From positions 15,066,001 to 15,130,000 of the forward strand of contig CP075495.1 of assembly GCA_021613535.1 (NCBI GenBank): DNA of 64,000 nucleotides, read 5' to 3'. The first letter of the stretch is position 1. Every line of letters begins with the position of its first letter. Both the position numbers and the translations under genes were made by a program. Origin of the DNA: Adineta vaga (Eukaryota > Animalia > Rotifera). Under the pieces are notes generated by a model. It was not told the DNA's origin. It searched no databases and saw only the letters and a list, made by a program, of their open reading frames with translations. This document shows, in pieces, positions 6,344-33,889 of the stretch.

Positions 6344-7495
6344 ATGTCTACGTCACATAATCTACGACATTTAATTGATATTGCTGATCATCTAAGCAAT
6401 CGTTTATCATCTCTTGAACCATCTTCATTAGAACAATTAGAACAATGGCGTCAAACAGCATATCGTACGATTGATGAATATTGTGAACAAAAACGTCATG
6501 ATTTAATTGAAAAAAAACAAATTCATGAACAACGTGAAGTCGATCTTCTTCGATCACGAATTACACATTTAATCGATCGACATGATCAAAGTGAAGAATC
6601 TTATAATTCAATTCATCATGATCTTCAATTAGCTGAAATCAAAATTAATGAACTTGAACATCAAAGATTTACACTTCGTCCTTTCAATATTCAGGATGAA
6701 CATTTTATCATTCGTCGACGTCTTTTTCCATTATCAAATCCATATCAATCAATTCATTTAAAAGCTGGTTTAGAAAGTGCACTTGGTACAAATGATAAAC
6801 ATCTTCTTGTTGATCGAGAAGGAAAAGATTTATGTCTACTTGATCGAAATTTAACATTGATCGAAGAAATTCCTTTTATTCATAATGGTATCCATGGAGT
6901 ATGTTGGTCATCAACAATGTCACGTTTTATCATAATAACATTTAAAGAAATTCTTTTACTTGATGAAAAATCAATGAAATTAGAACGATGTTCTATCGTA
7001 CCTGCAAAAAATGATTGGTGGCGTGGCACATGCTCAAATGATACTCTATTTCTTTCTACAGTTGAATGGGGTTCATCAATTTATGAATTTCAACTAGGTG
7101 GTTCATTTAAATTAATGAAAGAATGGCATTCACCTATAACATGTGGAAAACATGAAATTATATGTGATTTAAAATATAATAATGGTTTTCTTGGTATTCC
7201 GATTTATAATAAAAATAAAGAAGATAGTCGATTTGAATTACGTTCAATTTCAACTATGGAAACGATTTGGTCTGCTCGTATTCATGGACGATGTCGTTGT
7301 TGTTCAATTGATGTTGATCAATGGCTTGTTATGGATCATGATGATTGTCGATTTTTTCATATATCAGCTGATGGAAAACTTTTAGAAGCAAATAAATATG
7401 ATCAACATGAACGATTAGAAGATATTATTCCATGGGGCAATGATGATATTGTTGTATTAACAAAGAAAAGTATTCATTTACATAAACTGGCTTGA
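6344..7495 (+). CDS. Uncharacterised protein: N-terminal coiled coil plus probable beta-propeller
   Basis: Intronless 383-aa ORF. Helical N-terminus, then beta-rich W/C/D-containing blades. Confidence 0.7.
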   Translation: MSTSHNLRHLIDIADHLSNRLSSLEPSSLEQLEQWRQTAYRTIDEYCEQKRHDLIEKKQIHEQREVDLLRSRITHLIDRHDQSEESYNSIHHDLQLAEIKINELEHQRFTLRPFNIQDEHFIIRRRLFPLSNPYQSIHLKAGLESALGTNDKHLLVDREGKDLCLLDRNLTLIEEIPFIHNGIHGVCWSSTMSRFIIITFKEILLLDEKSMKLERCSIVPAKNDWWRGTCSNDTLFLSTVEWGSSIYEFQLGGSFKLMKEWHSPITCGKHEIICDLKYNNGFLGIPIYNKNKEDSRFELRSISTMETIWSARIHGRCRCCSIDVDQWLVMDHDDCRFFHISADGKLLEANKYDQHERLEDIIPWGNDDIVVLTKKSIHLHKLA

Positions 7496-7544
7496 AAAAA
7501 ACAAACACATTTTATTTTTTTTTAATTTAAATAAAAAAATATCA

Positions 7545-7695
7545 GACTAAATATTCTCCTACTCGTACAAGTAATCCATAGGCAAGAAGTGTTGCTCGTC
7601 TATCTGTAAAATATTCCATTTCTTCATTAGATAAAAATAGACAAATTCGTTTCTTTGTAAGTCCAATTGTTTCAAGTTGAATTTGAAATGTACTT
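7545..7695 (-). pseudogene. 3' fragment of NEURL4-type ART gene (third copy)
   Basis: Nearly identical to 14425-14490 (CGTACAAGTAATCCATAGGCAAGAAGTGTTGCTCGTCTATCTGTAAAATATTCCAT). Confidence 0.8.
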
Positions 7696-9547: not shown

Positions 9548-10029
9548 CTTAATATAAAAAGAACAATATTATGTATGATTATACATAAGAGTATTGAGAA
9601 TGTTCCGTATCATTCTGCTTGTAAAAATACTACGCATTACCTTTATCATTCACATATCCATTGTAAAAATGAGCCACTAAAAGGCGAATAATAACAACAA
9701 AATAACAAAGATGTGTTTATTCCTTGCAAATAACCATGCATACGTATGTATGCAGGCAGTGAACAATTCCTTAGACAAATATATTTATCGTACGATTAAA
9801 TTCATGTCCGCCGTTGTCACATTTCGAGCAGAAGATCATTGAGAGGTTACATGCTTCATTTCTTCATTTACGATAAAGAGTTAACCAACAAAATCCGTGC
9901 GAACACACAATGATTGCTGATATTCACACAAAACGTACTGTAAGAAAGATGAGATTCATTTAAAAATTATCACATTTAAGCTGGTATGAGTTTATTATCT
10001 ATATGACTAGTAAAATGAATGAATATCTG

Positions 10030-10466
10030 TTACTAATTAAATCGTGGTTAAATCCAACTATTCAGAAGAAAGTGAAATTTATGCATAGTAATGAAGAACT
10101 ATCTCAGTATATTGATCCATCTGTTCTTCCTAAAAGATTAAATGGTTCACAACCTGATTTCAAATACACTCCACCAACAAAGGAAAAGCATTAGCCGAAA
10201 TAGCACATCGAAATGCTGTGCGAAGTTATTTAGATGCAACATTACTATGGGCAAATGGTGATGAAACTCGTCGAGTATTATCTGAAAAACGAAAAGCACG
10301 AAAAGAACTTCGAAATACGTTTGAAGAATTATCACCTTATATGAGTACTCGTACAGTTTATCATCGTCTTGGTGTTATTAAAGAACCTATTTTTGAACTT
10401 GCCTATGAACAATTAAAAACAAAAAAAAGAAGAAAATGGTCTAACATAGTTTTAATATATATATAA
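10030..10466 (+). pseudogene. CRAL-TRIO/Sec14 (Csr1-like) C-terminal fragment
   Basis: LIKSWLNPTIQKKVKF...YIDPSVLPKRLNG, then a frame break, then LSPYMSTRTVYHRLGVI. N-terminus is missing. Confidence 0.65.
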
Positions 10467-10999
10467 GTGTCATTTCTATTGAACATTGATTATTGCCATA
10501 ATATAAGATGTGAAACAGATATTATTTTCATATAATAAAAAGGAAAAAAAAGGATCTTCAATCGTAAAACAAATCATCTTGAGGGTGAGAGTTGAAGAGT
10601 AAAAAGACAGAATGGCGATGACAGTTAAAACATTATTACAATTGGTTTTTCTTTTCTTTTCCAATGATCGTATTAACGTCATATAATTTACATTTGCGAA
10701 GGATATATTTTGAAGTTCAAGTTTTCCTACGTGGAATATTTCTCCTAAACATCAATAATTGTCATAATAGTACATGTTAAACAGATATTATTTTCACTTA
10801 ATAAATGAAAACATTTTTAATCATAGACGAAAAAAACTTAACATAAATAGTCGAGTCAATTGGAAAAAACTATATTGAATGCAGAGAATCAGTCTTTGGT
10901 TTCTACACTACTAGTGGTGTTACCAGTAGTGCGCATAGTCCGTTCAGAGCGAAAATCCTGGCGCTGATTCTGAAATCAATGCGTTTCCCTTTTGCTTCA

Positions 11000-12400
11000 T
11001 TTGTTCATCTGCTACTGAGAAATACATACATGAGTTAGAATTTCTTTCAAAATTTGTTTCGCTCTTTAATTGATTGAGATGTTTTGTCAATCAATTATTC
11101 ACTTTTATTGAATGAAAGAACATATATTCAGTTTTTTGTTTTAACACAGAAAAATATCAGAAATTTTAGCATGCAAAGAGAACTGCGCATAATCGAGCAT
11201 AATTGGTTATAAAACCTGAGTCGAAATCGCTGGCTCCACTATTGGCAATAATATCACCTATATAAACAACATCAAGAAATAAATGTACATAGAAAAAATC
11301 ATCACTCACTAATTTTGACCAAAGTTTTCTTTAAAAAAATTCTTTTCGATGAAGTTGAATCTTCATTATCGAGTAAGTTCAGCTGATGATTTATATCGAT
11401 CAAAGATTTTTGCTCTACACATATATGCGCCATAAGTTCAGCTAAACGTTGGACTTTTGTGTCACTCTGTACTTGTGTAATATGTTGTAAAACATAAGAC
11501 ATGATTTTCTTCGATTTGACCGTCTGATTGTCAATTGATTCTTTTAACAATTCAATAGGATCATCAATAATAACCAATTTTTCCATTAGTATTTCAATTG
11601 TCATTTCCATATCTGATATCACCTGAAGAAAATAAACATTTTATTACGTTTTATATACTTTTCAATGAACAATGTCAGTCAGAAAGAACAATAGAAAGAA
11701 ACGTTTTGTATGATAACCTGTCTATAGATCAGATATATGATTCAATTTAAATGAGAAAAAAGAAAGACAAATTCTTCGTTCATATACGCCGTTCAGGTTC
11801 AGTAGAAGAAAAAACACTTACTTTTTGTTTTTGTTCGTTGTCGATCATTATATGAATGAGAGAACGACCATCGTCATCTAGAAGAAAAATCAGTTATTTG
11901 AAGTTCACTAATAAATATAAATGATCACATACTCAATTCAACTATTTTATTTATTAAAAGTTTTTGTTGTTTACTATTCAATTCGAAAATTGATTTAGAA
12001 GCAATATATTACCAAAATTTAACAATATATCTTCCTGTATAATTTGTTCGTATTTAATATCGAGCTTGTAATGAAATAAAGTTATCTTTAATCGCATTTA
12101 CCTTGCCAATCTTGAAATAACCTAAATAAAGCATTGATTGATTGATTCATTTGAATGTTAAAGGAACAAATCTTTATGAGCATACTTACCTTCGTCACAT
12201 TTGATTGCTAAGACATCATTTATTACAATCTGTTCGTTTGGTTTTATATCTCTATTACTATACTCATGATCGTCATGGTAAGGACTATTATTGTTTGAAG
12301 TAATGTATGAAGAATCACTTATTGTTTTGAATAGGCCAGAGATAACATGTGTGGATTCGTCGTTTTTTGTATTTCATTCATTTACTAATAGATGCAGTGA
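11000..12400 (-). other. Multi-exon coding remnant, unknown (possible ankyrin-like exon)
   Basis: Minus-strand splice sites flank short coding-like segments (DDDGRSLIHIMIDNE; ORF 11302-11622). Confidence 0.3.
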
Positions 12401-14412
12401 CATCTTTATATACTAAATCATAAAGTACGAAATCAGATTGTTTTTTATACGGTACATTCTACGACTGAAATAAACATTACAGTAGTTTACAGAGAGGAGT
12501 TTACATTAGTCATACGTCTAAAAAGAGATTGTCTCCAAGGAAACGAGCATGAAGATATATGACTATACTCGATACTATCCACATCCTATTTAAATATCTA
12601 TTGAACATTATTTTTAAATCATTGCGCTCGTATCAATAAATATTAAAGTTCATTTTTCTCGAGATAGAGTAATAATTAACAGGATGAATAGATAGGTTGA
12701 AGTTATATATAATTGCATTGATAATATTCATATTCTGCTCATTTGTATCAATTTTGTTTATTTCATATAAAAAGCAATTTAAAAATTTTAAAGTAGAGCT
12801 ACATAAAAAATAAAACTAAAATACAAAGTATAAAAATGTCTTCTTTATAAAGAAATAATAATGAAATCATAGTGCATAAAAGAATGAAAAGAAAAGATTG
12901 AACATTTTTTCACTCAATAAAAATACTTAGTTCACTCTCGGTAGAGTTTTACTAAAAAGAGACGAAGATACAATTCATTGACGCCGTAAAACTATACTTT
13001 GGGTTTGAAATATTCTCTTATCATAGATATATAAGCATTTTCGTTGTTCTATGAACTAATATATTTTATTTAAATCAAGTATTCTAGGTTTTACTACATA
13101 CAGAACAAACAGCAATATCAAACGTATCTATTGTTTGGTTCGAGTACACCGTCTTTTTTATTATCCGTTGTAGGCACATCTTTCCAGTCAACATAATAAC
13201 AATCAGAAAAATAGTATAATCATCATTGCGAAAGGAAGGAATCTCGTTTTAAGCTGTCTTTATCCTTGATCAAAATTATACTGTAAAAGTACATTATAAA
13301 ACAAACTGAATGAGTTGATTTTAGATTTTCTCGGGAATCATTCAAATCGCACTTAACCTTATAGTGTACGGATTGTTTAATTGTCTTCGTCGTTTTTCAT
13401 GTATATATCATCATGCTGTTCGTCATCTATTCTTTCTTCTTTATTAAAACAGTAAAAAATTACGTGTAGTTAACATGAAAGAAAAATAATCTACTTATAT
13501 GAGATTAAAAAAAGCAACAGAAGAGAGCAATTTGTGATACATTTGATAATAACCTAACAACATAATAAACGACGAGAATGATTTTGAAATGAAAATATAA
13601 AATAAAGATGAACAATAGAGAAAAATAATTAGTATTGATTTATTCAATTTAATTGTTCTTGGAAAAAAATATTTGTTTATAATTTGTTCACATTCAGATT
13701 TTGTTTTAGTTGTATCTTTTAATAAAACATGTAGATTATTTCTTTTTATCATATTGAGAACAATAATATCATGAATATCATAGATGTATATTCACCTCTA
13801 CTGGTTTCAATACTATATGAGTAAAATATAATGGCTGTAATCCATTCCATTTCTAATAATATTTATCAATTGAAAAATTTTCAATTTCACATTCATAAAC
13901 ATTTACTTGTGACAATAAATCATACATCATTTGTTTACCTTCTCTTATCATTTGATCAATAAATTCATTACTTGAAATAAATTTTCGTAACATAGCCAAA
14001 ATCTCTATTCCACGTTGATAATCTTGAAGATAAATACACGATTCACCAAGTTTATAAATAAGAGCTGGTTGATTATCAATCAATGATACATTACTCCTAT
14101 AATTATCAGTAATGTATGGAAAAATAGTGCATGGTACACCTTCATCGATAATGTCTGTAAGATACTCCGGTCAATGAGTGAAATGATAAATTGAATTCAA
14201 CTTTTAAGCTTGAAACTATACTAAGTTGTTGTTAAACCGACATAGACAAGTATAGAATATATTGGATGGCTTTAACTGACAGAGATGACGATTACTGCGT
14301 ATTAACAAAGAAGAATATTTATTTACGTAAGTTTATTTAAACGAAAAGAAAATATTTCAACAAACTGCATAATTATTTATTTGTTCTACTATTCAAAATA
14401 TATGAGAATATA

Positions 14413-15408
14413 TCATACTAAATGTTCTCCTATTCGTACAAGTAATCCATAGGCAAGAAGTGTTGCTCGTCTATCTGTAAAATATTCCATTTTATCATTG
14501 GATATATATGGACAGATTCGTTTTCTTCCAAGACCAATAGTTTCACGTTGAATATTATATGTGTTTGGCATTTGTCGACATTGAAGAACTAATTGAGCTT
14601 GATAAGTTTGATTATTTTCTTTTGATTGAAATGAATAAATAGGACTGTACACTCTTGAACTTGAATAGACAATTGTTGGTGATGTAAAAATATATTTTTG
14701 ATCAGGAATATGTCCTTCTCGTATACCTAAAACAGTTCCATCAATTAATGCATCACCGGGCAAACAAAAGTGTCGATGTTTAACGATTGATAATGCAGCT
14801 ATTTTTGTAGTTCCATGAAATGTCACAATTCCTTTATTCCAAATATCATGAGTTTCACAAAATACAGGATCAACACGAAGACCAAAACGTATCCATCCTC
14901 TTGGAACAACATATTTTCCACCGCCAGCTTCAATCACATCTTTCCAATCAAGAGGATAACATCTCGAACAATAACAGCGATCTTCTCCTGTGTCAAATAA
15001 TGTTTCAGGCCATTTTAATGATTTAACAAATTCACGTGGTAAAATCATTCTCGGACAATGTAAAGGATCATATTTATATCTAGTAGATTTACGTTTATCT
15101 ACGACATGCGATGTTTCTTGACCTTGTTCATCGCTAACTTCTCTTCCATTTCGCCATTCACATGAACGAATTTCTCCATTTGCATAATAAAATGTTCCTT
15201 GACCACTTCTTCTATTATTTGTCCAATTCCCTTCATACCGATCTCCATTTTGCCAAGTATTAATTCCATATCCGTGCCTTAGATCATTTTCCCAATTACC
15301 TTTATATTTTCCTCCGTTTGCATAGTATAGGGTTCCTTGACCATGTTTTTTTTCATTTTTAACTTCTCCCTCATAACGATTACGATTAGGATATGAAATC
15401 ACCACCAT
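14413..15408 (-). CDS. MORN-repeat protein fused to NEURL4-type ADP-ribosyltransferase-like domain
   Basis: MORN repeats (YEGEVKNEKKHGQGTLYYANG x3-4). Then CYCSRC, YVVPRGWIRFGL, FHGT, FTSPTIVYSS and QLVLQCRQ, as in the NEURL4 C-terminal ART fold. Confidence 0.8.
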   Translation of the reverse strand: MVVISYPNRNRYEGEVKNEKKHGQGTLYYANGGKYKGNWENDLRHGYGINTWQNGDRYEGNWTNNRRSGQGTFYYANGEIRSCEWRNGREVSDEQGQETSHVVDKRKSTRYKYDPLHCPRMILPREFVKSLKWPETLFDTGEDRCYCSRCYPLDWKDVIEAGGGKYVVPRGWIRFGLRVDPVFCETHDIWNKGIVTFHGTTKIAALSIVKHRHFCLPGDALIDGTVLGIREGHIPDQKYIFTSPTIVYSSSRVYSPIYSFQSKENNQTYQAQLVLQCRQMPNTYNIQRETIGLGRKRICPYISNDKMEYFTDRRATLLAYGLLVRIGEHLV

Positions 15409-15763
15409 TTTCACGAATTCTGATGATTTATAAAATCCACTTCCTCAGATTCTTATCGATTTATTTGGTGAATTTGAGAAGAAGAAAAAACATCTGACAC
15501 ACTATATAAACAACAGAATGAAAGAATTCTGTGTTGTTGGAAAAAAATCATGAAATATTTAAAATGTTCTCATTCAAATACGTCTTTTTATTTTGTGTAT
15601 GTTTCAACAGGCTATGTATGTTATGTTGTTTTCTACTGTGAGGTGGAATTTGTATTTTATCTTTTCTTTTGATTCTTAGTCAAACACGTTTTTTGCTTTT
15701 CTTTCTTTCCGTTCTTCTATAATAATAATAAAAGTAATTGTTTTACATTCGACAGTCAAGAAA

Positions 15764-16722
15764 ATGGCAAATAAACACTTCAATTTATCATCCTTACATC
15801 GTCGTTTTGCATCTCTTGCACTTTCATGTGTTCATCGTGAATATCCAAATAAAATTGCTCATGTTCTTACATCTGATGCCGATATTCAAGCACCTCGTCA
15901 ATTAACACCTGCATTTTATGGTTGTTTTGATTGGCATTCAGCGGTTCATGGTCATTGGTTATTAGCTCGTCTTGCACGTATTGATTCAAATCTAACAGAT
16001 GAATGTTGTCAAGCACTTCGACAAAGTTTAACAAAAGAAAATCTTGATAATGAAGTGAAATATATTGATAATAATCAACGACAAGCGTTTGAAAGACCAT
16101 ATGGATTAGCATGGTTATTGCAATTAACAATGGAATTAGATGAATGGTCAAAAGAAAAAAATGAGGAATGTTTTAACCATCTTTTGAAAGAAATACAACA
16201 ATGGCGTGAAAATCTTCGTTCATTAGAAGAACTTGTGGTGAAACGATTTTCATCTTGGTTACCAAAACTATCGTATCCTGTTCGAAGTGGTGAACATAGT
16301 CAAACAGCTTTTGCTCTTGGACTTTCTTTGGATTATGCTCGACATGTTAACAATGAAACATTTGCACAACTTATTGAAGAACAATCATTACGATTTTTTG
16401 CTCAAGATAAACTCTATCCATTTAATTATGAACCATCGGGAGAAGATTTTCTCTCAGCAGGTTTAGCTGAAGCTGATCTAATGCGACGTGTTATGAAGAA
16501 AAACATGGATAAATTTTATCGAATGGTTGAAAGAATTTTTACCAGAAAAAAATCAGTTACCATCGAGTCTTGAAGCACCTGCTATAGCAGATCCAACTGA
16601 TCCAAAATTGATTCATTTAGCTGGTCTATGTCTTAGTCGAGCATGGATGTTAGAAGGTATTATTCAAATGTTACCAGAAAATAATGAACAACAAAATCAA
16701 TTGAATCAATTAAGTCAAAGAA
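15764..16722 (+). pseudogene. DUF2891 family protein, copy A (frameshifted, 3'-truncated)
   Basis: REYPNK, FYGCFDWHSAVHGHW, FERPYG and EPSGEDFLS motifs. +1 frameshift near 16515. Homology with copy B stops at 16722. Confidence 0.85.
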
Positions 16723-16755
16723 GGGTGTGGGTGTGGGTGAGGGTGTGGGTGTAGG
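16723..16755 (+). repeat. Interstitial telomere-like tract GGG(TGTGGG)2 TGAGGG TGTGGG TGTAGG
   Basis: Read directly; G-rich hexamers in otherwise ~70% AT DNA. Confidence 0.8.
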
Positions 16756-18832
16756 TTCACTATAGTTGATTTAGTCGGTTAACATCATCGTATGAAGACA
16801 TCTATTCACTTGTGCTGCTCTTGAAAAATATCCTCCAACGATAAGAATAGAGAGGTCGCAATGGTACTTCTATTGTATTAATAAATCTAATAGATAGCAA
16901 TATAATTCAAAAGTTTATTATCACTATGAGTTCAGCAAGTATTGCCGATGCGACATATAAATTAATGCATGCAGAAATGTTCGATAAAAATTCGTTGTTG
17001 TACGAAGAAAGTGTTTTTAAAGTAATTATGTGTACAAAGTTCAAAGTTCTTTCGGTACTTGCTTTTTTTTGTTCAAAGCTTGTAGATGAAGCTCTCGAAA
17101 TTATTGATCGATCACCTATTTCGACTACTGAATCTAATCAAGAATCATGTTTGGAGGTACTCAATGAATCATTTATTAGTAAACTAAGAGCACGTGCACA
17201 TGCATTGCGACTATCTACATGGAATGGAGATGCTAAACGAATGTCTGGTAAACTTTGAAACCTTTGTCATTATGATTTACTTCTTTATTCTAGCTATTAA
17301 ATATAGCTGTAGTGAATTGGGTAAATTAAATTACATAATGAATGAATCAGAACAACATTTATTTAACAACAAACTGTAAGTAAGGATTTTGTTATTTCTT
17401 TAACCCATTTCTTCTTTTTTCAATTTCAAACATCAAGGAAAAAAGCATTTAATCAAACCATGTACGATTTCAGTACCATGATCAATGATCTGAAAATAAC
17501 TGGTAAGAATAAAATACTAATTGTTTTAGTTAACGATTTAACACATAATAAGTAAGAGAATGAAAGAAAGACATTCACTCTTCTAGCTGTTCTCGTTTTA
17601 TTGGACGTAGTTTCATGAAAATTGAAATATATGTTAACTTTTTTAGGTGGAATTATTAAACATAGTGGAAATAATTTGAAGGTACATGGTGGTAAATTTT
17701 GAGAACAAATATTCAACGGGTAGATAGACTTTGACTCTGATTAGATAAATAAGCATAAGGAAGGTTTTGGAGAAGTAGTTCTTTCTATCTCTTCAGTTGA
17801 TCAGAATAATTTTCAGCAGTTTTATCATTGTTTATTATATATTTTAGACCAATGAAATCCAGAAGTGTATCTTATTCACCACGTAAATCCAAGACTGCTA
17901 AAATCTCGTCGGATACATCTCATAAAAAATATGATAACAACGAAATTTCTTCATTGTCATCAATTAAAAAGAATATTAAAGAAAGTGTTATCTTGATGGA
18001 TGGAATTTTAAAGGAATCAACAATTACAACAGAACCACCAGGTGCTTTATGAACATTTTTTATTGATATTTTTTGATGAATGAACCGTCTGTTATGTTGG
18101 ATATTTCATACCTTTGATTTATTATTATTTTCTAACTCACGAAAAAAAATACACTGAAAACTTTTAGCTAATCGATACAGTAAACAAAAGAAGTTATTAC
18201 CATTAATATTGAAAAGAAAACGAAAAGTTTTCAATGCTAGAGTTTATATTCTAAATTGTGCGTAAGGTTAATGTTTTCGAGACATTATAAGAGTCAGGTT
18301 TTACAAGGAAAAGACTATATCGTTTATATCTCAATATTTTGTAATATATTCGTAACCTTCATAATATGGATTTCATGTAGAACAATATTGCAATTACACG
18401 AGAAATGAAATAAATAAACAAATTTTTATAAATATGTTTACAACTTACAAAATCTCGAATTCAACCACGGGACAGTTTTATTTACATTTCCTAAAGTATA
18501 GGTAAATTATACAGAACGTCGAAAAAGATGTCGAGTTTATTACAAGAAGGTTTTTTCACTGAGTACAATGAAGGTATTCGAAAATGCTAGGCGATCGTCT
18601 GAGTAGGAGATGTCTATCATCTTGCTAAAAGTTCAATAGATAATGTTGTTCATTGACAATTATTTTATTGATCCATTTTATTAGAAAAACCATCAAAAAG
18701 AAGAATTATAAGAAATGTATAAAGGCATTAAACAAGCATTCTTTAATATTCTGTAAAATGTGAGATTATTGTCAATTGAAAATAAAAGAAATTGTTTTCG
18801 TCGTCAATTAATCCAAGTATGTTTTAAAAAAA

Positions 18833-18996
18833 TCATTTTTTCCTAATCGTATATCGACATTGAGAGCAATATCATCAATGAGATTTGACCGATAAATTTG
18901 TTCCTAATACAGAAAGAGAATGAGTTTTGTTTGAGATAAATCTTACATTATTAGAACCTCCGCTATAAAATGGAGTACTTACATTTGCATGTCCAC
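18833..18996 (-). pseudogene. Deleted paralog of the nested secreted peptide gene at 31544-32030
   Basis: GHANVSTPFYSGGSNN|intron|EQIYRSNLIDDIALNVDIRLGKK*, with the same intron position as the intact gene. Confidence 0.7.
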
Positions 18997-19027
18997 TAAA
19001 AGAAAAAAGCGAAAGTTAAAGTGTTAA

Positions 19028-19399
19028 ATCGATGTGACTAGCACCATTTTCAGCTAGCACCACAAAATCAAGAATTTTCTCAAAACGAATTCCCGTCCAT
19101 GTAAAACAGTCTATCCGACGCAGAATTCAATTATGCATCGAATGATGTCACTTTTACTCACGGGAAAACGTATGGAAAAATTTAGTGAGAATCTTTCTTT
19201 TGTACATGTATGTATACAACAAAAAATAAAAATTGAGGTAAGCTCTGTTCCGATCGTTTTCCCGTGAGTAAAAGTGACACCATTCGACTTAGAATTTATT
19301 TCTGAATCTAATGAACTAGTTTTTATGGGCGGGAATTCGTTTTGAGAAAATTCTTGATTTTGTGGTGCGAGCTGAAAATGGTGCTAGCTTCACATCGAT
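19028..19399. mobile_element. Palindromic MITE/foldback element
   Basis: Long imperfect inverted arms (ATCGATGTGA..CTAGCACCATTTTCAGCT..CACAAAATCAAGAATTTTCTCAAAACGAATTCCCG and its reverse complement). Confidence 0.85.
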
Positions 19400-19547
19400 A
19401 AAGTTTTAATCGATGTTAACTAAGAAATCTATATACATCATAAAGATGAAATTTGATTAATAGTTAAGATTTATAAAGAAGAACAGATCGTGTAAAATAT
19501 GATTGATTTGCATACAAAATTTAAATATTTGTTTTACTTTTCTTTAG

Positions 19548-21110
19548 TTTATGGTGCTCGTCCATTGAAACGTTATCTTGAAAAATATATTACAACTGAA
19601 TTATCAAAACTATTAATTCAAACAAAACATGCACCACATAGTCGTGTAACAATCGATAAAAATACAAATGATCAATTTCAATTTCATATTAAACAATTAC
19701 AACGAACAACATCTAATTCACCAACTAAATCAGCATATGGTCGTTGTAACGATAATGATATCGTTCATCTCTTCCTGTTCTCTATTCTCTCACCTCTATA
19801 TCATATTGTCTCCGGGTCATCTCTCTCTTTCCTCTTCTCTATATAAACGTGTGTCTTATTGTGAAATCGGGACATTCTGGTCATGTAGAGTAGTCAATAA
19901 ACATCATACCGTGAGAGGCGGTTAGCTACTCAACCAGTTTGTCATTACATGGCGACCCTGGCTAGTGAATCTTCGCAAATCTATTCTAAGCAGATTCTCT
20001 AGTAAACACCAACAACATGGAAGATCAATCAATGAATCAATGGAAACTTAATGGTCAATCAGTCACTGTCATGTATGCAAAATAGCAAGTATGGATTTTG
20101 GATTAATGTGATGATGAACCTCCTCAACGGCATGAACGACATCGTGATCGCGTGGGCAAGCGTTGGCAGGAATATTGATTTGGAAATAATTATTTGAAAG
20201 AAAGACAATTTAAGAATTTTATTGATGTGTAGCTGCGAGAACGACCCAACGACCGAACAGCCGAGTTATCCGTGAGAAGAATGACATGGAAGTGTTCCCC
20301 TTCTACTGCGTGGCGATTCATTTTATTGGCACAAGATTCGTTCGAATAAAGTTGCATACAGAAGAGTGCACTAACTGACTCATTATATTTTTATTTTTTT
20401 TGCTTTGTATGAAACATCGAGGTAATCGATTTAAGCAAGAGGATGAGGAAAAGTCGTAGTAAATATCTCTTTTTAATGCGTATGTGTTTGATATTGCGCT
20501 AATTTTTTTTGTATGAACATCGTAGTTGTTTGATCGCAGTTTATTTAAACTATTTCGTTTTATGTAAACGTTTATAAATCGCATTTTTTGTTGAGATATT
20601 TTAATGTATTCGATGAGTTTATATTGTTCGTAGTCATGTGACCTTTCTCATGATCATTATCTACTCATCTTCATTTTTTTTTCGCTTTCGACTTTATATT
20701 GTAAAGACGCTCAGGAGCGCGTCTAATCTGAATGGGAGGGTGTAACGATAATGATATCGTTCATCTCTTCCTGTTCTCTATTCTCTCACCTCTATATCAT
20801 ATTGTCTCCGGGTCATCTCTCTCTTTCCTCTTCTCTATATAAACGTGTGTCTTATTGTGAAATCGGGACATTCTGGTCATGTAGAGTAGTCAATAAACAT
20901 CATACCGTGAGAGGCGGTTAGCTACTCAACCAGTTTGTCATTACAGTCGTAAGTGTATTTTTTAATTTCGGAATTAATTTTATCTCGAATTCTTTTCTAT
21001 TCTTAGGTCGTCGCACATGCATATGAAGGTTTAGATGAAGACGAAGATTATGATAACAATTATACACGAAAACAAGAGAAAATTATAGATATATAAGAAA
21101 CAACAATGAC
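19548..21110 (+). pseudogene. Duplicated last two exons of Hsp104/ClpB, interrupted by an LTR element
   Basis: [21 protein letters not shown] matches 32231 onward; last-exon remnant [13 protein letters not shown] at ~21007-21110. Confidence 0.85.
19745..20945 (+). mobile_element. Non-autonomous LTR retroelement (TRIM-like, 1201 bp)
   Basis: Two apparently identical 205-bp TG...CA LTRs (19745-19949, 20741-20945); 5-bp TSD GTCGT; PBS-like TGGCGACCCTGG at 19950; PPT AATGGGAGGG at 20731-20740; no gag/pol ORF. Confidence 0.93.
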
Positions 21111-21429
21111 AATGAAATGTTGACAAGTAATAAACATCTGACATAAAGAATAACAAAGAAAAAACTCAGGTGAATAAATACAGATATACAATATAGTTAA
21201 CAGGAAGGAAAAATAATCTATTTATATAAAACAAAAAAAACGATAGAAGGGAATAATTTGTGATATCCACAATAGTAAATTCACAATATAACAAAAAAGA
21301 AACAATCGATTTAACAACAAAACTAAACGCAAAATACATACGTTCATCACATATCAAGGAGAAATATATTTGAACAGTAATGAATGTAACAATACCATTT
21401 TTTCAAAGAGAAAAAAAATCAAAAAATAT

Positions 21430-21679
21430 TTAGTCTTCACAAATTGTTTCTTCTCGTATGCGTTCAATCAATAGCAATTGTTCACGTTTAATAAAATTAA
21501 CAGATGGTTTTAAATTATTTTTTGCAATACATTCATCCATACAGGCAATATATTGTGTTCGTTTGTGTCTTTCAACGATCATAGGTAATAAATCATATTT
21601 CATGAGTATTTTACTGGATAACAAACGACCTAAATGACCATTACTATCGACAAACGGATGGATACGAATGAATTCTGCA
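21430..21679 (-). pseudogene. Fic/Doc domain fragment
   Basis: AEFIRIHPFVDSNGHLGRLL is a degenerate HPFxDGNGRxxR motif. The 5' part is disrupted by insertions. Confidence 0.75.
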
Positions 21680-21937
21680 TCCAAGGACGATGGTTCCTGG
21701 AAGCAGAATTCCGCTTATTTCCGGTGAAAATCTGCAGGATAACATGAGAAGGTGCCTGGAATCCTGCTGAGAGAACTGGTGATCGTATCCGACTATCGAT
21801 TATGGCAGGTTCTTGTCGGTTTCCAATAAAACCGAGTAAATCCGATGACAGGATTCGGTCACTGGAATACTGCTCCCATGAAATCTCCGGAACGTCCTGA
21901 AATTGGACGGTTCCAGACTGAATGGTTTGATCTTGGA
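21680..21937. mobile_element. MITE of the CC(C/A)AGGACGA family
   Basis: GC-rich island with TCCAAG...CTTGGA ends; resembles 54492-54815. Confidence 0.6.
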
Positions 21938-21965
21938 TGGATCATTATATTTTGTAAGGTTAGTT

Positions 21966-23311
21966 AACAAGTAACGCTCATCTTTAGATTCGCTGACCCT
22001 TTTTCTGAAAGAATGATAAGAGTGCTCAGCAAACCCATAAAGCGGGACCTGGATCTGACCGGATTCGTTCTCGTAGATCATCAAGTAGGCGCCTCCTGAG
22101 AAACGTCCAAACCACGTGAAAGTAATTCAAATCCATATTCTGAAGTATCACTCTCTAGATCAACGTCTAGACGTTCGTCGGCCACTCACGGCTAGCCGTT
22201 AACATAGACGTCTTTATTGTTTCGTCTACTTTTGATTCATTTCCCAAACAAATAAGTGAATTTCTTTTGTTCTCCTCTTGAAAAGGCACATACTTTGTAT
22301 TACTATGATTCTCGTAAAGAGAATAGAAAGGCCAAGTACTATCTTATGAGTCGCTAGAATTAGAGAATATTTTACTAGAATAGTTTTTTTCATGCTTGAA
22401 ATATTATTTCCATTTTTGGCGCACAGCTGCATCCGACAAGACAATCACAAACATCCATCTGGTTTTTATACGAATATTTATTGAAAAAATTCCATCAAAT
22501 GATCTGATGTATAGTGGTCGACCACGAAAAGATGGTTAACCCTTTCGAGCCGGATGCATCCATATGGATATATTTTGCCGTAGGGGGTACAGCATTTTCC
22601 AAATAGCCGGCCGGAAAGGGTTAAAAAAGCTGACATAAGTATCGTACCTATTCTGTCAAGTACCTGAAGTGCAGTTTTTTCTATCAATTTCTTACTAAAT
22701 CCTATACTCAGAAGTCGTAAATGATTCAAATGGCACATACAGCCCACGAACACTAGCCCATTCATTAGTTTCTATCACCCTTTTAAAGGGAGATATACAC
22801 TGAGATATTTATCTTGGAGAGAGAGGTAAATAACAATGGTGGAATCGATCCCATAGAACTAGCATCAGATTCAAATTCGTTAGTATCGATAATTTTTTAT
22901 AGAATTTGACCAAACACTCATGAAACATTGAGTTTTCTGGGAGGGAAAGACCAAAATAGGTCTCAGATAAATAATTCATCGAAAATTAGCATCGGATTCG
23001 AGATCCTTGACCTCGATTACCCATCGGTCAACCCTTACTTCACAGTATAAAAATTTATCATTAGTTAATTAGTTAATTAGCTAATTAGGAAATCAGTATT
23101 TCGGAAAACTAACGTCAGATTCGAGATCCTTGACCTCGATTACCTTTGGTGAATCATTTCCAGATCGCCATCATTAAGTTTTCAGTAGTTTATAAAATGC
23201 TGCAATCTGATTGGCTTGGACAAACTCACAAACTCACAAACGCACAAAATTTTAGCATTTTATTGAGCGTAATTTTTACGCTATAACCCTTTCTTTCAGA
23301 AAAGGGAATAA
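21966..23311 (-). mobile_element. Helentron-associated non-autonomous element (HINE/DINE-1-like)
   Basis: On the minus strand it starts TTATTCCCTTTTCTGAAAGAAAGGGTTATA (subTIR plus short IR), has a GTTTGTGA microsatellite and an internal repeat, and ends with the inverted subTIR CTTTCAGAAAAAGGG, a small hairpin and GCGTTACTTGTT. No TSD; TT target. Confidence 0.72.
22540..22620. mobile_element. 81-bp piggyBac-type MITE nested in the HINE
   Basis: TTAA|CCCTTTCGAGCCGG...CCGGCCGGAAAGGG|TTAA. Confidence 0.8.
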
Positions 23312-23869
23312 GTGCGATAATCTTTCATTTGTTGATATTTCGAATTCATAGAGACGACATACATGAAGAAGATAAATTTCGTTTGTCGAAACGTTACAAA
23401 AGCCAGTATCAATACAATTTTATCCGTTTGATAATTAAAAATTTTTTAGTTTTATCTAATAATTTAAGTTTATAATTTTAAATTTATTAATTATTTGATT
23501 GGTCCAATTTTTCAAATTTTATTATTATTAATTTTATTCAATTTGATTTAAATCAAGTAAAATTTTTACTCTATTTATTCTTTTTATTTGAATTTATCTT
23601 ATATTAATTTTGATTTTATTAATTTTACTTTATTTAATTTTTAATTTATTTATTATAATTTCTTTTTGAAATAAAAAGAAAAAGAAAAGATTTCTCTTAA
23701 TTGAATTTTATAAAAATAAAATTAATTGATTGAATTTCCTGAGAATTAAAAAACTCAATTCAATATAACTGAAGAAGACAAATCAACTAATTAGTATTTC
23801 AATTATTCATCAACCTGATCAATAAATATTGAAAACAAAGGAAGAGATTTTCTGAAAACTATTAAATAT

Positions 23870-24250
23870 TATGACCTTCCAGTTAACAAGAACCCAATCT
23901 TCTATCTGTAGTAAAGTATTCTATTTTTTCATTAGAAATAATTGGAAAAATTCGTTTTTTTCCAAGTCCAACTGTTTCAGGTTGGATTTAGAATGTATTT
24001 GGCATTTGTCGACATTGTAGAACCAATTGAGTTTGATAAGTTCGATTAGTTTCATCTGAATGAAATGTATAGACGAGACTATAAGCTCTTGAACTTGAAT
24101 AGGCAATAGTAGGTGTAGTAAAAAAATATTTTTGTCGATATTTTAGAATTGATAACGCTGCTACATTTTTTTGTTCCATGAAATGTAATAAGCCATTTAT
24201 TCCAAACTTATGAGTATAACAAAATGCAACATCAACTTGGAACAACATTC
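23870..24250 (-). pseudogene. Degenerate NEURL4-type ART gene, copy B
   Basis: KYFFTTPTIAYSSSRAYS..QTQLVLQCRQMPNTF* is homologous to 14413-15408; it has deletions, frameshifts and a stop. Confidence 0.85.
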
Positions 24251-24607
24251 AAACTAAGAAAATAATGAAGTTGCTTCATGTTTAGGATATTTATGTTTGT
24301 CTGGTAAAGCGAAAGCCTTTGAATTGGATTTTTTCCCTGACTAACTTCCTTTATGATGTATAATTTATTGTTTTTCCAATTTCCTACCTATCAATGTCCA
24401 TCTTCCCAAATATTTACTACCTGTATACTTTCTACCGTCTCCAAACAAATGAATTTTTTCATAGGATAATAAGCTTCTTTCTCGTTTCTAGTCAAATATA
24501 TTTATTTGTTGCTTTTTTTTTCTTTTCTGTTATTCTTAGTCAAACACGTATTTTTTATCTTTTCTCTATAACAAATAAATGTAATCATTACACGTGTAGA
24601 AATTAAA

Positions 24608-25711
24608 ATGGCAAGTAAACGTTTAGATTTATCTGCATTACATCGTCGTTTTGTATCTCTTGCACTTTCATGTGTTCATCGTGAATATCCAAATAAAATC
24701 GCTCATGTTTTAACATCTGATGCCGATATTCAAGCACCTCGTCAATTAACACCTGCATTTTATGGTTGTTTTGATTGGCATTCAGCGGTTCATGGTCATT
24801 GGTTATTAGCTCGTCTTGCACGTATTGATTCAAATCTAACAGATGAATGTTGTCAAGCACTTCGACAAAGTTTAACAAAAGAAAATCTTGATAATGAAGT
24901 GAAATATATTGATAATAATCAACGACAAGCGTTTGAAAGACCATATGGATTAGCATGGTTATTGCAATTAACAATGGAATTAGATGAATGGTCAAAAGAA
25001 GAAAATCATCAAGTATCTTTTTTCAGTTTTCCTTTAGCAATGAAATATGGATTTTGTTCTCTTTTATAGATTTTAAAAGAAGTTAAACAATGGCGTGAAA
25101 ATCTTCGTACATTAGAAGAACTTGTTGTGAAACGATTATCGTTATGGCTTCCAAAATTATCCTATCCTGTTCGTAGTGGTGAACATAGTCAAACAGCTTT
25201 TGCTCTAGGTCTTTCATTGGACTATGCTCGTCATGTAAACAATGACATATTTGCACAACTTATTGAACAACAATCATTACGATTTTTTACTCAAGATAAA
25301 TTCTATCCATTTAATTATGAACCATCGGGAGAAGATTTTCTATCGGCTGGATTGGCTGAAGCTGATTTGATGCGTCGTGTAATGAAGAGAAATTCTGAAA
25401 GATTTCTTCAATGGTTTAAAGAATTTTTACCTGAAAATAATTTACCAATAAATCTCGAACCACCTTCTATAGCTGATCCAACTGATCCAAAATTGATTCA
25501 TTTAGCTGGTCTATGTCTTAGTCGAGCATGGATGTTAGAAGGTATTATTCAAATGTTACCAGAAAACAGTGAACAACGAAATCAATTGAAAGATTTAAGT
25601 CAAAGAAATGCTCAAGCTGGTTTAACAGCAATTGATGAAAGTCATTATGAAGGTGGACATTGGCTCGGAACATTTGCTGTGTATTTGATAACACGACGAG
25701 GGATTAATTGA
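24608..25711 (+). CDS. DUF2891 family protein, copy B (intact; bacterial-type gene with one intron, 25013-25069)
   Basis: Exons 24608-25012 and 25070-25711 join in frame across a GT..AG intron. Ends HYEGGHWLGTFAVYL, typical of the family. Confidence 0.9.
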
Positions 25712-25989
25712 GATGAAATCCGTTATAAGAAGAAGAAGAAAAAAAAATGATTGTCTGATTTTTAATCTATCTATCGATGTGTAAAAGTAGTAAAATGCGT
25801 GATTGTTAAATAACACATTAAACCTTTGAATTTCGTTCTTAGAAATCATCGAGAATATTCTAAGACGGATTATCTGTTAAAAACTGCTTAGATTTAGATA
25901 AAGACAGTATTTCAAGATCGAAACATGTATTCATATATAACAGATACTGATCATTCATTTCATCTTCATTATTTTTCTACGGAAAGAAA

Positions 25990-27245
25990 ATGTCGTTTAA
26001 TAATTCATCACTCATTGATATACCTTCCGATGATTCATTATTTTCGGGTCGTCCAACACCAATTGATTGTCGCACTGTACGAATTATTGGCATATTCTTA
26101 TGTCTCACTTCATTTGTTGGTATTTTTCTAAATAGTTCTCTTTTGATTAGTTTTTCTCGACATAAAGAATTACGTACACCACAAAATATATTTATTATAT
26201 TTACAGCAATAGTTGGTCTCATTGCTTCTTGCATTAATCTTCCTGCATCAGGTTCATCATCAGTTTTTTGCTATTGGTTATATGGTCGAGTTGGATGTCA
26301 GTTAGAAGGTTTAATTGCATTTCTATACGGATGTTCAAGTTGTTATCTACTCTGTACCGTTAGTCTTAGTCGATGTTATATCATCATTCGACCATTCAAT
26401 GCGAAAGATGTGACAGTAAGTTTAAAATAGTTTTATAATTATATATCAAGAAAAAATATTTTAATCATTGTTAGGTTATGAAATGTGTTTTCATTTCATG
26501 TATAGCTGTGTTAGTTGCACTTCTTTGGACAATATTACCATTAGTTGGATGGAATGAATATACTTTAGAAGTTTGTATAAAACTTTCTTGTCTTTAATTT
26601 AATCAATGAAATATATTTATAGAGATCTCTTACATCCTGTTGTACAAATTTGTATGATCGTCGTCGATCATTTGTAGCATTCAATCTATTTATATTTGTC
26701 GTTGTATATTGTGTACCATTGATTATTTTAATCACAACAAATTCAATTATTTATACGGGACTTAAACGTATGCGTGAGAAAATTGCGCATGGAGTTAAAG
26801 CAGAATTGAGTCAAAGAAGAGTTGAAATGGAACGACGTATTTTTAAGAGTAAATTTCTTTTTTTCTTTTTGAAAAAAGATTTAATGAAAGATATCAATTT
26901 GATCTTTTAGGTATTGTTATGACAATTTTTGGTTTTATTTTTACTTGGACACCATATGCAATAACATTTTTTATATCTGCATTTGGTAGAAATAATTATG
27001 ATGTTCCACCAATGGCAACATTTATTTGTGCTTGTTTTGCAAAAACATCTGTAGTTTGGATTCCAATACTTTATATGAGTACATCAAAACAATTTCGACT
27101 TAGTTTAGTTGATAAAGGTACACTTGAGAAACTCGGTGGAACAAATTCAGCTGCTGGAGAAGTCGCAAATCTTGCCGTTATTTCTCGTAACGTAGACAAA
27201 GCAGTGGTACATATTAAACAAGAAATTTCAAATAAGGATGAATAA
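25990..27245 (+). CDS. Opsin (7TM, retinal-binding Lys in TM7)
   Basis: Exons 25990-26415, 26475-26570, 26623-26848, 26911-27245. Motifs LRTPQN, GCQLEG, GWNEYTLE, WTPYA and FAKTS...SKQFR. Confidence 0.88.
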
Positions 27246-27410
27246 ATCAAAAAACCCCTCTCTCCCTTAAATGTATAGTTGTACCTTTGCTTTGTATATT
27301 GTTTGTTTATATTGTAAAGTAGAGATTAGTTATTAGAAGTTCTAAGAAAAAAAAAGGATGAAATTATCAATTTAAAGTCTAGAAGATATTGATTTGTCAA
27401 TTGATGAGAT

Positions 27411-27847
27411 TTATGTTGGCTAGAAAAAAGTGAATCGATTTGATAAGATTAAATATTTTTCTGAAGAAAGAATCTTACAGTAAAATTCATAATAACATGA
27501 AGTTCACCATGATTCGATAGACCAAGATGAGCAGGTAATTTAACCCAATCATCAAATTTTCCATCATCAAAAACATTTTTAAGTTTTACCTTTCCACTTC
27601 CAATAGCATCTCGATCAGCAACATCAGAATCATAAACATCAAAATGGATGGTATCATCATCGGAATGAATATTAAATGTAAAACGTTCATTCCATACAGG
27701 ATCGTTTGTATTTTGAAGTGTTGTTGTACGTTGTTTATATTTCTTTTGAGTATAAATTTCAACAAATGGATCACTTTGTCCAACAGTATCTTTATCCTTA
27801 AAACGACGACCTTCAACAATAATCACTTCAAGCGTTCCGGTAGGCAT
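27411..27847 (-). CDS. Single C2-domain protein
   Basis: GTLEVIIVEG..DKDTVGQSDPFV..TNDPVWNERFTF..VYDSD..DAIG with the Ca-binding Asp residues retained; tiny last exon 27411-27419. Confidence 0.88.
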
Positions 27848-28314
27848 TGTATAGTCAATGAAGCGAAAAAGTAAATGACTTGTTTGAAAATATCGATGAA
27901 TATACAATGATTTTTCTTTTACCTTGAAACGATAAGAAAAACGTATTTTTCCTCATTCATTCGTATGAGATCAAAATACGATTAACTCAAAAAACAACAC
28001 TTGTGCAACAAACACGTGAATTGTAACATATTTATCCTAACTATAATATATAATTTTCAAAGATTATAATAATTCTTAATTCTATTGAACTCATACAAGA
28101 AACAAGTATAAATTATCAAAATTTAATTGAATAAAATGTATTGAGATATCGACGAGCATAGCTCTCTACTTCATCACTTTTTTTCGTTCTGTTGACATGT
28201 CTACATGACAGACGTGCACGTCCGTTGTTTTTTCTCGTTCTACACGTAAATCAGTTATAGAAGGAAATTTTCTTTTTCTCTTCTGTTCTCCATTATCTGC
28301 GTTGATACCACAGA

Positions 28315-28364
28315 CTTCTCGAACGTTCCAGAAAATTCTTCTTTCTTTTTGAAATTTATATAAA
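28315..28364 (+). promoter_or_regulatory. Five-unit heat shock element plus TATA box
   Basis: cTTCtcGAAcgTTCcaGAAaaTTCt (28315-28339) followed by TATATAAA (28357-28364), upstream of Hsp104. Confidence 0.9.
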
Positions 28365-28615
28365 TATACTTTTGATCGTCAGCTGGAAATCAATTGTTCA
28401 TATAACTGTGTACAAACGCCCTCCACTTCACTTTAATTTATTCTCTGTAAGTATCAGAAAGCAAATGATTCTTTTTCTTGACACTAAAACCTATTCTAGC
28501 GTCATCTTGTCTATAAGACTAGGATCCAATAATATATTTTCTTTCTATACTCGATAACGATAAGAACATATATTTATTTTTATCTTTATTCATTTCTTTT
28601 AGTAATTAACAAATA

Positions 28616-31600: not shown

Positions 31601-32644
31601 TGCATTAATTTGTCCCTAATTGAGAAAGAGCAGATGTGTTTTTTCTAGATAGTTTGTATGAAAAAGAAGAGACTTACATTATTAGAACTCAAACTTGCAT
31701 CGACAGTTCCACCAAGACCAACTGAAGGTTTATCAGAACCTCCATTGTAGATTGGAATACCAACATTTGCATGTCCATTAACATCATAAGTATTTAGATT
31801 ACTGAGACCAGCACTGCCTTCTATATCTGATGTCCACTAGAATGCAAACATGAAAGTTAGAAAAATGAGTAGATCAATATGTATTTAAATACTTGTCCCG
31901 ATTGAGCAGCAGCAAGAGCTAATTGTGATGCAAGTTGTTGTTGAGATAGTTGAAAAGTTATTGGAAAAGCTTCTACTACCATACCGAACATTAATACATA
32001 CAAACAGAGGGTAGATCCTAAGGAATGCATAGTGGATATAATGTTCGGTCGATAATAAATGTTTTATGAATATTGATCATCGATATTTATAGGAGAAAAC
32101 ATCGAGTAACTTAATATTGATTTGGATCCAAAATGTAAATATTTTTTATCAATATAACACCTTCAAAATCAATTTAAAATACAAATATTTATATAAATTG
32201 TTTTTGAATTAATAATTTCTTTGATTTTAGTTTATGGTGCTCGTCCATTGAAACGTTATCTTGAAAAATATATTACAACTGAATTATCAAAATTATTAAT
32301 TCAAACGAAACTTGCACCACATAGTCATGTTACAATTGATACAGATACGAATGATCAATTTCAATTTCATATTAAACAATTACAAAGAACAACATCGAAT
32401 TCACCAACAAAACCAGCATATAATCGTAAGTCTTTCAAATGATCGAATGAGTTTAATTTAGATCGATTTTTCTAATAAGTTAGGTCGTCGAACATATGAA
32501 GGTTTAGACGAAGAGCCAATGATGGATGTCGATGAAGATGAAGATTATGATAATAATAATCAATTTAGTGGTTATGACAACAATATGAATCCATCATCAG
32601 GAATTTCAAAACGAATGAAACAATCACCAAGAACATACAAATGA
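28616..32644 (+). CDS. HSP104: Hsp104/Hsp101/ClpB disaggregase (cytosolic type), multi-exon
   Basis: Clp-N domain; [10 protein letters not shown]; Walker A GEPGVGKT and GPTGVGKT; FIDEIH; coiled-coil M domain; [10 protein letters not shown]; YGARPL. Short GT-AG introns plus one long intron (31479-32230). Confidence 0.95.
31544..32030 (-). CDS. Nested 122-aa secreted Gly-rich protein (not in ORF track)
   Basis: Exons 32030-31893, 31836-31678 and 31615-31544 with phase-0 GT-AG introns give an open frame with a signal peptide and a stop. Confidence 0.82.
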
Positions 32645-33889
32645 TGAATGATTTTTCGTGCAATAAAATTGACATTATAATCTGGAAGGAATTTTCTTTC
32701 ATTTAGCGTATTTTATTTTTAAGCTTAGTTATGTAGTATCTCGTGTGTTATTTTCTTTTCTCTTGTTAATAAACATTCTTTAACTCATTTAAATATCGAA
32801 TGAAGAGTTGTTCGTAAGCACAATCAGAACAAAAATAATGAGAAGATGAAGATTAATGAATCGTTTGACTGCTATTCGACAGATGATGATGAGCACGACT
32901 AAATAAGATACTTTGGAATTACTTATCTTCATTATGATGAAAAATTAAAGTGATAATAACTACAATATAGTTTCCTCTTTTATGATTTTCTTCTAACGAT
33001 GAACACGGAAAAGCGACGATCTGCAGAAGAAGCCCAAAACTTAATTGCTGCACTGGCGATTAATATCGCCGCATGGGATGACCAAGAGATGGACGAAGAT
33101 GAAGAGAAAAAGTGAATAATTTTTCGAACAGTCAGCGAAGTCGACACAAGATACGCATATATATATGACTCCATCTTTCTTTTCTAGATAAGTATGTGCA
33201 AAAACACCGAACTTATTAATCAGATATCTGTTGATATCACAACAACAAATACGACGAATAATGTAAGTTCCTTACATAGTTATCCCATATCAATAATTCA
33301 TGTGTGAAGGTGCGCAGGAATTAACATGAAGCTTTCTTCTATCAGATCCATGAATGCTTATTAATTATTACTTTTAGACATCATCGAACGAACAAAAACT
33401 ACTTCGTATTATGAATCAACAAGAATTAACAGATTATTTTCAACAAAAACTTATGATCGAATGACTCCATCGAGATGTAGAAGTTGCTGAAAAGAATTTA
33501 ATTGTTGGTCAAATGAACTTTCACAAAAAGATAAAGGAAATTCTATATAAACATTTGGAAAAAGTCATGCTACATTATGAACTGTGGAATAACTTTCTTC
33601 TCTTTTTCTTCATATCAAATATATGCTTTGTCCAAATTAAGTTTTTTGCGATATACAATTTTCACACAGAAAAAGAGCTCACATGATTAGAACTAAAACT
33701 TACATTAATAATACTATCTATACCACCTAATGATTTATCAAAATCTCTATTGTACATTGAAATACCAATCTTTACATACGCCCTCATATAATAGTAGTTG
33801 AGACTATTAAGAACAGTAGTCGATATACTATATCAGATGTTCACTAAAAGAAAAAATATATAGATCAAGAAGATGATTAGATCAATATG

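Follow-up and report, generated by a model that had tools for sequence, protein, structure and literature searches.

A telomeric-repeat tract on the broken end of a DUF2891 gene in Adineta vaga, probably left by telomerase capping and later rejoining

Why does a gene in the interior of an Adineta vaga chromosome run, from one base to the next, into telomeric repeats? The window, a 64,000-nucleotide stretch of DNA analyzed here at its full length (C2:15,066,001-15,130,000; chromosome C2 has 16,274,841 bases, and gene tags begin with I4U23), reads, across 16712-16765 of the + strand, AAGTCAAAGAA, followed directly by the tract GGGTGTGGGTGTGGGTGAGGGTGTGGGTGTAGG (16723-16755) and then by TTCACTATAG. 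The tract lies 1,192,086 bases (~1.19 Mb) from the right end of chromosome C2. A preliminary description of this DNA proposed that a double-strand break had been capped by telomerase and then extended or rejoined, and that the sequence past the repeats might derive from a Terminon retroelement. The features on which the first of these proposals turns are as follows.

15764-16722, + strand: DUF2891 copy A (DUF2891-A), a pseudogene (Pfam PF11199; alignments with copy B, A. ricciae, A. steineri and the chromosome-4 copy)
16723-16755, + strand (G-strand): interstitial telomeric tract, 33 nt, 5.5 units
24608-25711, + strand: the intact, expressed DUF2891 copy B (I4U23_010508; 348 aa), in two exons (24608-25012, 25070-25711)

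The tract consists, in order, of GGG TGTGGG TGTGGG TGAGGG TGTGGG TGTAGG, starting with GGG and having TGAGGG as its third unit. It was the sole 15-mer repeat match (at most 2 mismatches) in the window, where shuffles expect 0.00, and a regular-expression scan of the window and the next 20 kb found no further telomeric tracts. The motif (TGTGGG)n is telomeric in bdelloids and in A. vaga itself (PMC7943196, PMC13564844), and the left end of chromosome C4 opens with ~124 nt of CCCACA units, with CCCTCA (TGAGGG on the other strand) among them, oriented as expected at a true end; the species repeat is therefore TGTGGG, as the telomerase proposal needs. No telomere repeat was found in the terminal 10 kb at either assembled end of C2. 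The preliminary description took both TGTGGG and TGAGGG to be reported bdelloid repeats, which is correct for TGTGGG; the literature searched contained no mention of TGAGGG in rotifers, and its support comes from the genome sequence. There, TGTGGG-TGAGGG-TGTGGG occurs 73 times, nearly always within 2-3 Mb of a chromosome end, and the TGTAGG variant occurs 12 times. Bdelloid subtelomeres characteristically contain short stretches of telomeric repeat (PMC2861651, citing Gladyshev and Arkhipova 2007).

The DNA to the left of the tract belongs to a duplicated, bacterial-type, horizontally acquired gene. Two open reading frames, 15764-16573 and 16527-16754, are two frames of this one gene, DUF2891-A, and both match PF11199 above the Pfam gathering score (1.7e-89, 300.5 bits; 1.1e-13, 51.3 bits). 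Within the 325 positions of the profile, the match extends up to 298 in copy A versus 324 in copy B. With the exons of copy B joined for alignment only, copies A and B align as far as 16722 (B 25607) and share no similarity beyond, B continuing for another 104 nt to its stop codon at 25709-25711. The preliminary description had DUF2891-A tracking copy B as far as CAAAGAA and then switching abruptly to telomeric repeat, and the end of this alignment one base before the tract bears it out. In a five-way alignment, copy B, A. ricciae, A. steineri and the chromosome-4 copy all carry a conserved ATGCTCA.GC.GG... after AAGTCAAAGAA. Since four intact relatives stay conserved past this point, it is a true breakpoint in copy A, directly past the first base of the residue-315 codon, and the C-terminal 34 codons and the stop are gone.

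Copy A carries other lesions relative to copy B: a +1 frameshift at 16514, a 3-nt in-frame insertion, and 12 nt at the site of B's 57-nt intron (a 45-nt deletion). Intron gain in B was considered for this last difference and rejected, as an intron occupies this position in A. steineri and in the chromosome-4 copy too, and A. ricciae has lost it. The genome holds one more DUF2891 copy, on C4, and A. ricciae and A. steineri have one A/B-type orthologue each. Because A and B are 91.6% identical to one another and each only ~85% identical to A. ricciae, their duplication is placed later than the A. vaga/A. ricciae split. Counted at sites with the same base in A. ricciae and A. steineri, changes at codon positions 1, 2 and 3 number 2, 1 and 12 for A and 6, 6 and 11 for B. 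The pattern in A indicates that purifying selection acted on the gene over most of its lifetime, and it makes the disabling lesions look recent; judged by these counts, the break in DUF2891-A looks recent as well. Gene conversion from B could blur this argument, given that A and B share one identical run of ~100 nt. The RNA-like run X12 showed no exact copy-A contig among its listed pieces, and exact-protein look-ups returned no database record for the DUF2891-A open frame, the open frame of the first exon of gene X (described below) or copy A of a neighboring MORN/ART-like gene. Reads of a further organism hold a DUF2891 relative and are uninformative on the junction.

The DNA to the right of the tract has a different history, to which three entries apply.

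16756-18790, + strand: X-locus fragment, homologous to A. ricciae contig L026, 996-3011
16926-17855, + strand: coding part of orphan gene X (I4U23_010505, 158 aa), with ATG at 16926 and stop at 17853-17855
16765-17247, 17294-17375, 17438-17502 and 17848-18164, + strand: exons of the gene X transcript, from an X12 contig

Gene X is spliced and expressed, with three GT..AG joints (three introns) in a contig of a single run, X12, and its open frame is that of the annotated protein I4U23_010505. Searches used exon 1; the full protein of 158 aa was taken from a database match (P0121), and the exons were joined only for a frame check. No Pfam family matched the protein, which has nine relatives among 1.84 billion representative proteins, the named ones being from A. 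ricciae and Rotaria sordida. Reads of another organism hold exon 1 of X at 99% identity and are likewise uninformative on the junction. The region 16756-19000 is low-copy, with 2-3 diverged local paralogues (60-73% nucleotide identity) situated 57-68 kb further along the chromosome. X differs by ~27% from the nearest of these and so is no fresh copy of a source that still survives. Homology to the A. ricciae contig begins at the first base past the tract, and that contig has no telomeric repeat and other DNA upstream; the right flank of the tract is therefore also a breakpoint, ~170 nt upstream of the X start codon. No microhomology was found at 16755/16756. In comparison with intact homologues, then, both flanks of the tract are breakpoints.

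Could this right-hand DNA be a telomeric retroelement, as had been suggested for the open reading frame at 16926-17258? Athena and Terminon elements attach by reverse-complement repeats that adjoin a hammerhead ribozyme at the element 3' end (PMC8557442), and EN-deficient PLEs attach to G-rich overhangs in bdelloids (PMC8557442, PMC3846280), so that an element attached in this way would be expected rightward of the G tract and in minus orientation. The suggested frame is instead exon 1 of the spliced, expressed, low-copy gene X, with its homologue in A. ricciae. A check for hammerhead ribozymes at 16756-18800, which the preliminary description had called for, gave no match at E<=10 across 16600-19000; none was found at E<=1 in 10000-30000, and the scanned open reading frames of 16756-24600 contained no reverse transcriptase (RT) or other element domain. 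A loose positive control, tract L035, did give a hammerhead-like match, below threshold but in the expected geometry, on the minus strand and ~180 nt rightward of that tract. Together with the attachment of EN-deficient PLEs to G-rich overhangs, that control is what speaks for a Terminon or Athena element having joined the healed end here and supplied 16756-18800. Against it stand the lack of RT and hammerhead, a gene on the + strand (the wrong one) with three introns, the low copy number and a non-repeat homologue in A. ricciae, and this origin, rejected here, is the least probable of the explanations considered. Athena and Terminon also adjoin G-strand tracts elsewhere in the A. vaga genome, but their hallmarks (RT, hammerhead, 3' reverse-complement repeats, minus-strand orientation and multi-copy distribution) are missing at this locus, and no Athena or Terminon element is involved in it.

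The arrangement of neighboring genes gives a view of what was lost. A single order is found in A. ricciae, G383 - G347 - MORN/ART - DUF2891 - GPCR - C2 - Hsp104 (C2 being here a gene), and the unit of A. vaga that contains copy B retains it. The unit that contains copy A is flanked as follows.

14413-15414, - strand: MORN/ART-like gene copy A, left neighbor of DUF2891-A as in A. ricciae (Pfam MORN 2.6e-17; A. ricciae L021 8656-9678)
18827-21041, + strand: segment duplicating the long intron, last exon and 3' flank of Hsp104, with colinear counterparts at window 31538-32649 and A. ricciae L021 18189-19164

The Hsp104 segment includes a ClpB_D2-small match in an open reading frame at 19499 and an internal duplication spaced by 996 nt (19728-19949 and 20725-20945). 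Nearby, Hsp104 3' fragments are repeated three times and there is an exact 205-nt duplication. A mir-3688 match at 19148-19277 corresponds to a 140-nt inverted repeat, does not reach the gathering score and was treated as chance. Where the B unit has 25608-31537 (5.9 kb; 7.2 kb in A. ricciae), the A unit has the tract and the 2.05-kb X fragment, and it has lost the DUF2891 tail and the stretch that holds the GPCR gene, the C2 gene and most of Hsp104 in B and in A. ricciae. Because the A unit keeps both its left part (MORN/ART and DUF2891) and its right part (Hsp104), the event was internal and the chromosome continues beyond it. On this gene order, X may either have pre-existed in the A unit, in which case a deletion was sealed via the capped end, or have moved in. 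The chromosome-4 DUF2891 region (30 kb to either side) shared nothing with this locus but the gene itself and yielded no ancestral order, which A. ricciae supplied.

The direction of the tract bears directly on its origin. Its G-strand reads 5' to 3' onward from the 3' end of the broken DUF2891-A and is joined to the gene's last base; a G-strand on the + strand thus prolongs the broken gene at its 3' end, as expected when telomerase acts at the proximal end of a break. Our data suggest, with a probability of about 0.65, that 16723-16755 is a fossil neotelomere, or short interstitial telomeric sequence, in which a break capped by telomerase was later rejoined without participation of Athena or Terminon. 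By this account, a double-strand break would have struck DUF2891-A past the first base of codon 315, and telomerase would have added at least 5.5 repeats straight onto the exposed 3' end. The capped end would then have been joined, most likely by end joining, to a DNA edge ~170 nt upstream of X, the net outcome being an internal deletion with rearrangement, for which the telomerase-capped end provided the seal. The earlier proposal of capping followed by extension or rejoining is thereby supported in the form "capped, then rejoined" by the species repeat, the G-strand direction and the breakpoint relative to four homologues. The tract is a scar that itself serves no function, and X remains expressed, separated from the tract by a short stretch of native upstream DNA.

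Comparison with other tracts in the genome helps to distinguish telomerase products from templated units. Many of the 20 other tracts that were fetched open with a constant ATCTTGA right before GGGTG, and several of the same 20 are head-to-head pairs with a C-rich arm. Genome-wide, the exact ATCTTGA leader with the tract start was counted 417 times versus 0 in the control, and tract starts without the leader number ~377, including those of a ~535-bp satellite near the end of C1. Hundreds of tracts are 25-36 nt long, and their orientation shows no strict polarity towards the chromosome ends. The leader-bearing class looks templated. Head-to-head seams of the form (TGTGGG)n-spacer-(CCCACA)n with ATCTTGA resemble the present tract in having the same repeat, a similar arm (~25-36 nt) and a position at junctions of unrelated or truncated DNA, but 16723-16755 has a single arm joined to the gene's last base, with no opposing C-rich arm and no ATCTTGA leader upstream. 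The absence of both fits direct telomerase addition better than a templated unit. We would venture, tentatively, that the leaderless single-arm tracts (~300) may record a routine repair path of this holocentric and desiccation-tolerant animal, distinct from the leader-bearing class, in which telomerase seeds ~5 repeats wherever a broken 3' end happens to lie, before ligation joins the capped end to any available one; the probability of this generalization is low.

Alternatively, the healed end could have served as a real chromosome end for generations, with the distal DNA restored by break-induced replication/BIHER and with template switches to the X locus and then to the Hsp104 region, instead of a simple ligation. 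A. vaga has holocentric chromosomes, fragments of which are transmissible, and multi-generation repair of broken chromosomes, BIHER and transient neotelomeres have been reported or proposed for it (PMC13564844). The right side of the junction also has the look that replicative repair would give, a patchwork of nearby pieces in which the X paralogues, the repeated Hsp104 3' fragments and the 205-nt duplication all figure. However, the ~27% distance of X from every surviving paralogue argues against recent copying from those, and 16755/16756 offers no microhomology for priming. Although ligation and copying are inseparable by sequence alone, we consider this replicative route unlikely. A second alternative, that the tract already existed as an interstitial tract or retroelement-derived tail, traveled with the X fragment and was ligated along with it to the broken gene, draws on the abundance of 25-36-nt tracts, many of them clearly templated with a constant leader. 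It is distinctly improbable, however, because the A. ricciae X locus is tractless at the homologous point, the A. vaga X-paralogous loci in the 20 kb beyond the window are tractless too, and 16723-16755 lacks the leader. Furthermore, its G-strand ends at X rather than starting there, so the tract cannot be X's own telomere.

A junction of this kind could also be an artifact, the gene and the tract having been brought together by the assembly and present in no molecule. The region 16200-17300 is contained wholly or partly in 20 runs from nine studies, with 0.81-0.98 of its sampled 31-mers present in runs of several studies and 0.98 in three runs. In the 2013 run X3, a 2,364-nt contig begins at 16723 and is identical through 19000; it carries the entire tract and 2.2 kb to its right without differences and so confirms the right junction. 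No contig among the listed pieces bridges 16722/16723, which is what a chimera would predict, and support for this left junction consists of the 0.98 share of words and the long-read assembly. Contigs are nevertheless expected to break at 16723, since other loci, L028 among them, contain the tract's initial 29-30 nt, and we judge an assembly chimera very unlikely. In the 2013 run, contig depth was 62-71 for A-specific and X sequence versus 107-122 for B-specific sequence; depth is a poor measure, but these values hint that the scar may sit on one homologue only, with A present once and B twice. If so, the event would be recent and still datable.

Telomerase-capped then rejoined, the preferred reading, places this locus beside two known kinds of telomeric sequence away from chromosome ends. 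Neotelomeres at deletion breakpoints have been described in A. vaga by Houtain et al. 2026 (PMC13564844), where mutation-accumulation lines carry telomeric repeats and Athena fragments at such breakpoints. Those cases share with ours the species, the (TGTGGG)n repeat, a non-telomeric breakpoint and a position in the distal 1-2 Mb. They differ in that they are fresh, soft-clipped ends, whereas the present tract is an internal scar of some age, fixed or at any rate present in the assembly, with both flanks mapped to the base through a paralogue and a sister species and with the end rejoined and no longer terminal. The phenomenon is thus already published for A. vaga, and this locus is an unusually clean further example.

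The other comparison lies in vertebrates, where short interstitial telomeric sequences were reportedly inserted during the repair of double-strand breaks, in work attributed to Nergadze et al. from 2004 and 2007. The likeness consists of few units at a repair junction, non-telomeric flanks and the likely involvement of telomerase. In the vertebrate cases, however, the flanks are contiguous in related species and the repeat is a pure insertion, whereas here the flanks are non-contiguous and a deletion or rearrangement accompanies the tract.

Since the intact sequence is known on both sides (from the paralogue and sister species on the left and from A. ricciae X on the right), the junction can be read without guesswork. 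A single locus adds little to what has been published; its value is that of a calibrated reference for sorting tracts into those made by telomerase and those templated by retroelements. It would provide a base-resolved natural case of an internal break on which telomerase has acted, in an animal noted for surviving massive DNA breakage. The event also illustrates how such repair may shape the genome, since a horizontally acquired gene lost one of its two copies here while the orphan gene X was kept running beside the tract.

The intron of DUF2891 differs among the copies compared. In the intact copy B it is 57 nt long (25013-25069) and is spliced in RNA, and sequence comparison (loci L023, L005 and L021) places an intron at this same site in copy B, the chromosome-4 copy and A. 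steineri, while the A. ricciae gene has lost it cleanly. In copy A, which ends at the telomeric scar, 45 nt of the intron are deleted and the residual 12 nt (16165-16176) are read through in frame. In run X3, the 2013 sequencing run, a B-like contig alone matched copy A at 15778-16126 (depth of all contigs and of other contigs both 93.5), and exact A contigs were found further right at a depth of 62-69. The missing exact A contig could reflect gene conversion, samples that differ in haplotype, or a filter in the tool.

Further sequence features lie in and around the A unit. The 3' flank of G383, which lies two genes left of MORN/ART in the ancestral order, is fused to the MORN/ART 3' end twice, 6.9 kb apart (7450-7690 and 14285-14567), so the region underwent at least one further duplication or insertion besides that of A and B. 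The A-unit Hsp104 3' fragment contains an exact 205-nt direct duplication (19745-19949 and 20741-20945, spacing 996 nt), which arose very recently or else is a product of the assembly. A 140-nt inverted repeat, 84% complementary with a 70-nt loop (19038-19177 and 19248-19387), has the X fragment on one side and the last-exon fragment of Hsp104 on the other; the microRNA-like Rfam matches there are spurious, produced by the repeat itself. Minus-strand ORFs run from 21166 to 22765 between the A and B units, among them:

21433-21684, minus strand, ORF that matches Fic/DOC weakly (E 2e-4, short of the gathering score)

X, the orphan gene right of the scar (I4U23_010505), has a paralogue, X', on the same chromosome:

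C2:15138640-15141441 (window-equivalent 72640-75441), minus strand, X', colinear with both ends of the homologous A. ricciae contig L026

X' is without the part matching about 280-1877 of L026, where exons 1-3 of X sit. The 5' half is lost from this X copy and retained in the copy at the scar.

At the left assembly end of chromosome 4 (L024, C4:1-124), the first 124 nt or so consist of CCCACA units interspersed with CCCTCA and short-unit variants and are a real terminal array. The telomere repeat was absent from the last 10 kb at both assembly ends of chromosome 2. Chromosome 1 has, close to its right end, a tandem satellite of about 535-bp units (C1:18106492-18132816), each unit of which carries ATGGGTGAGGGTGTGGGTG once, in dozens of copies.

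Genome-wide, an ATCTTGA leader stands directly 5' of GGGTG(T/A)GGGTG in 417 telomeric tracts (reversed control, 0), for example:

C2:14915628-14916148 and others (loci L029, L031, L033, L039 and L040), leader-bearing telomeric tracts

The sequence upstream of the leader differs from site to site and is unique at each. About 377 tract starts are leaderless. Leader-bearing and leaderless tracts look like two classes, one templated and one direct.
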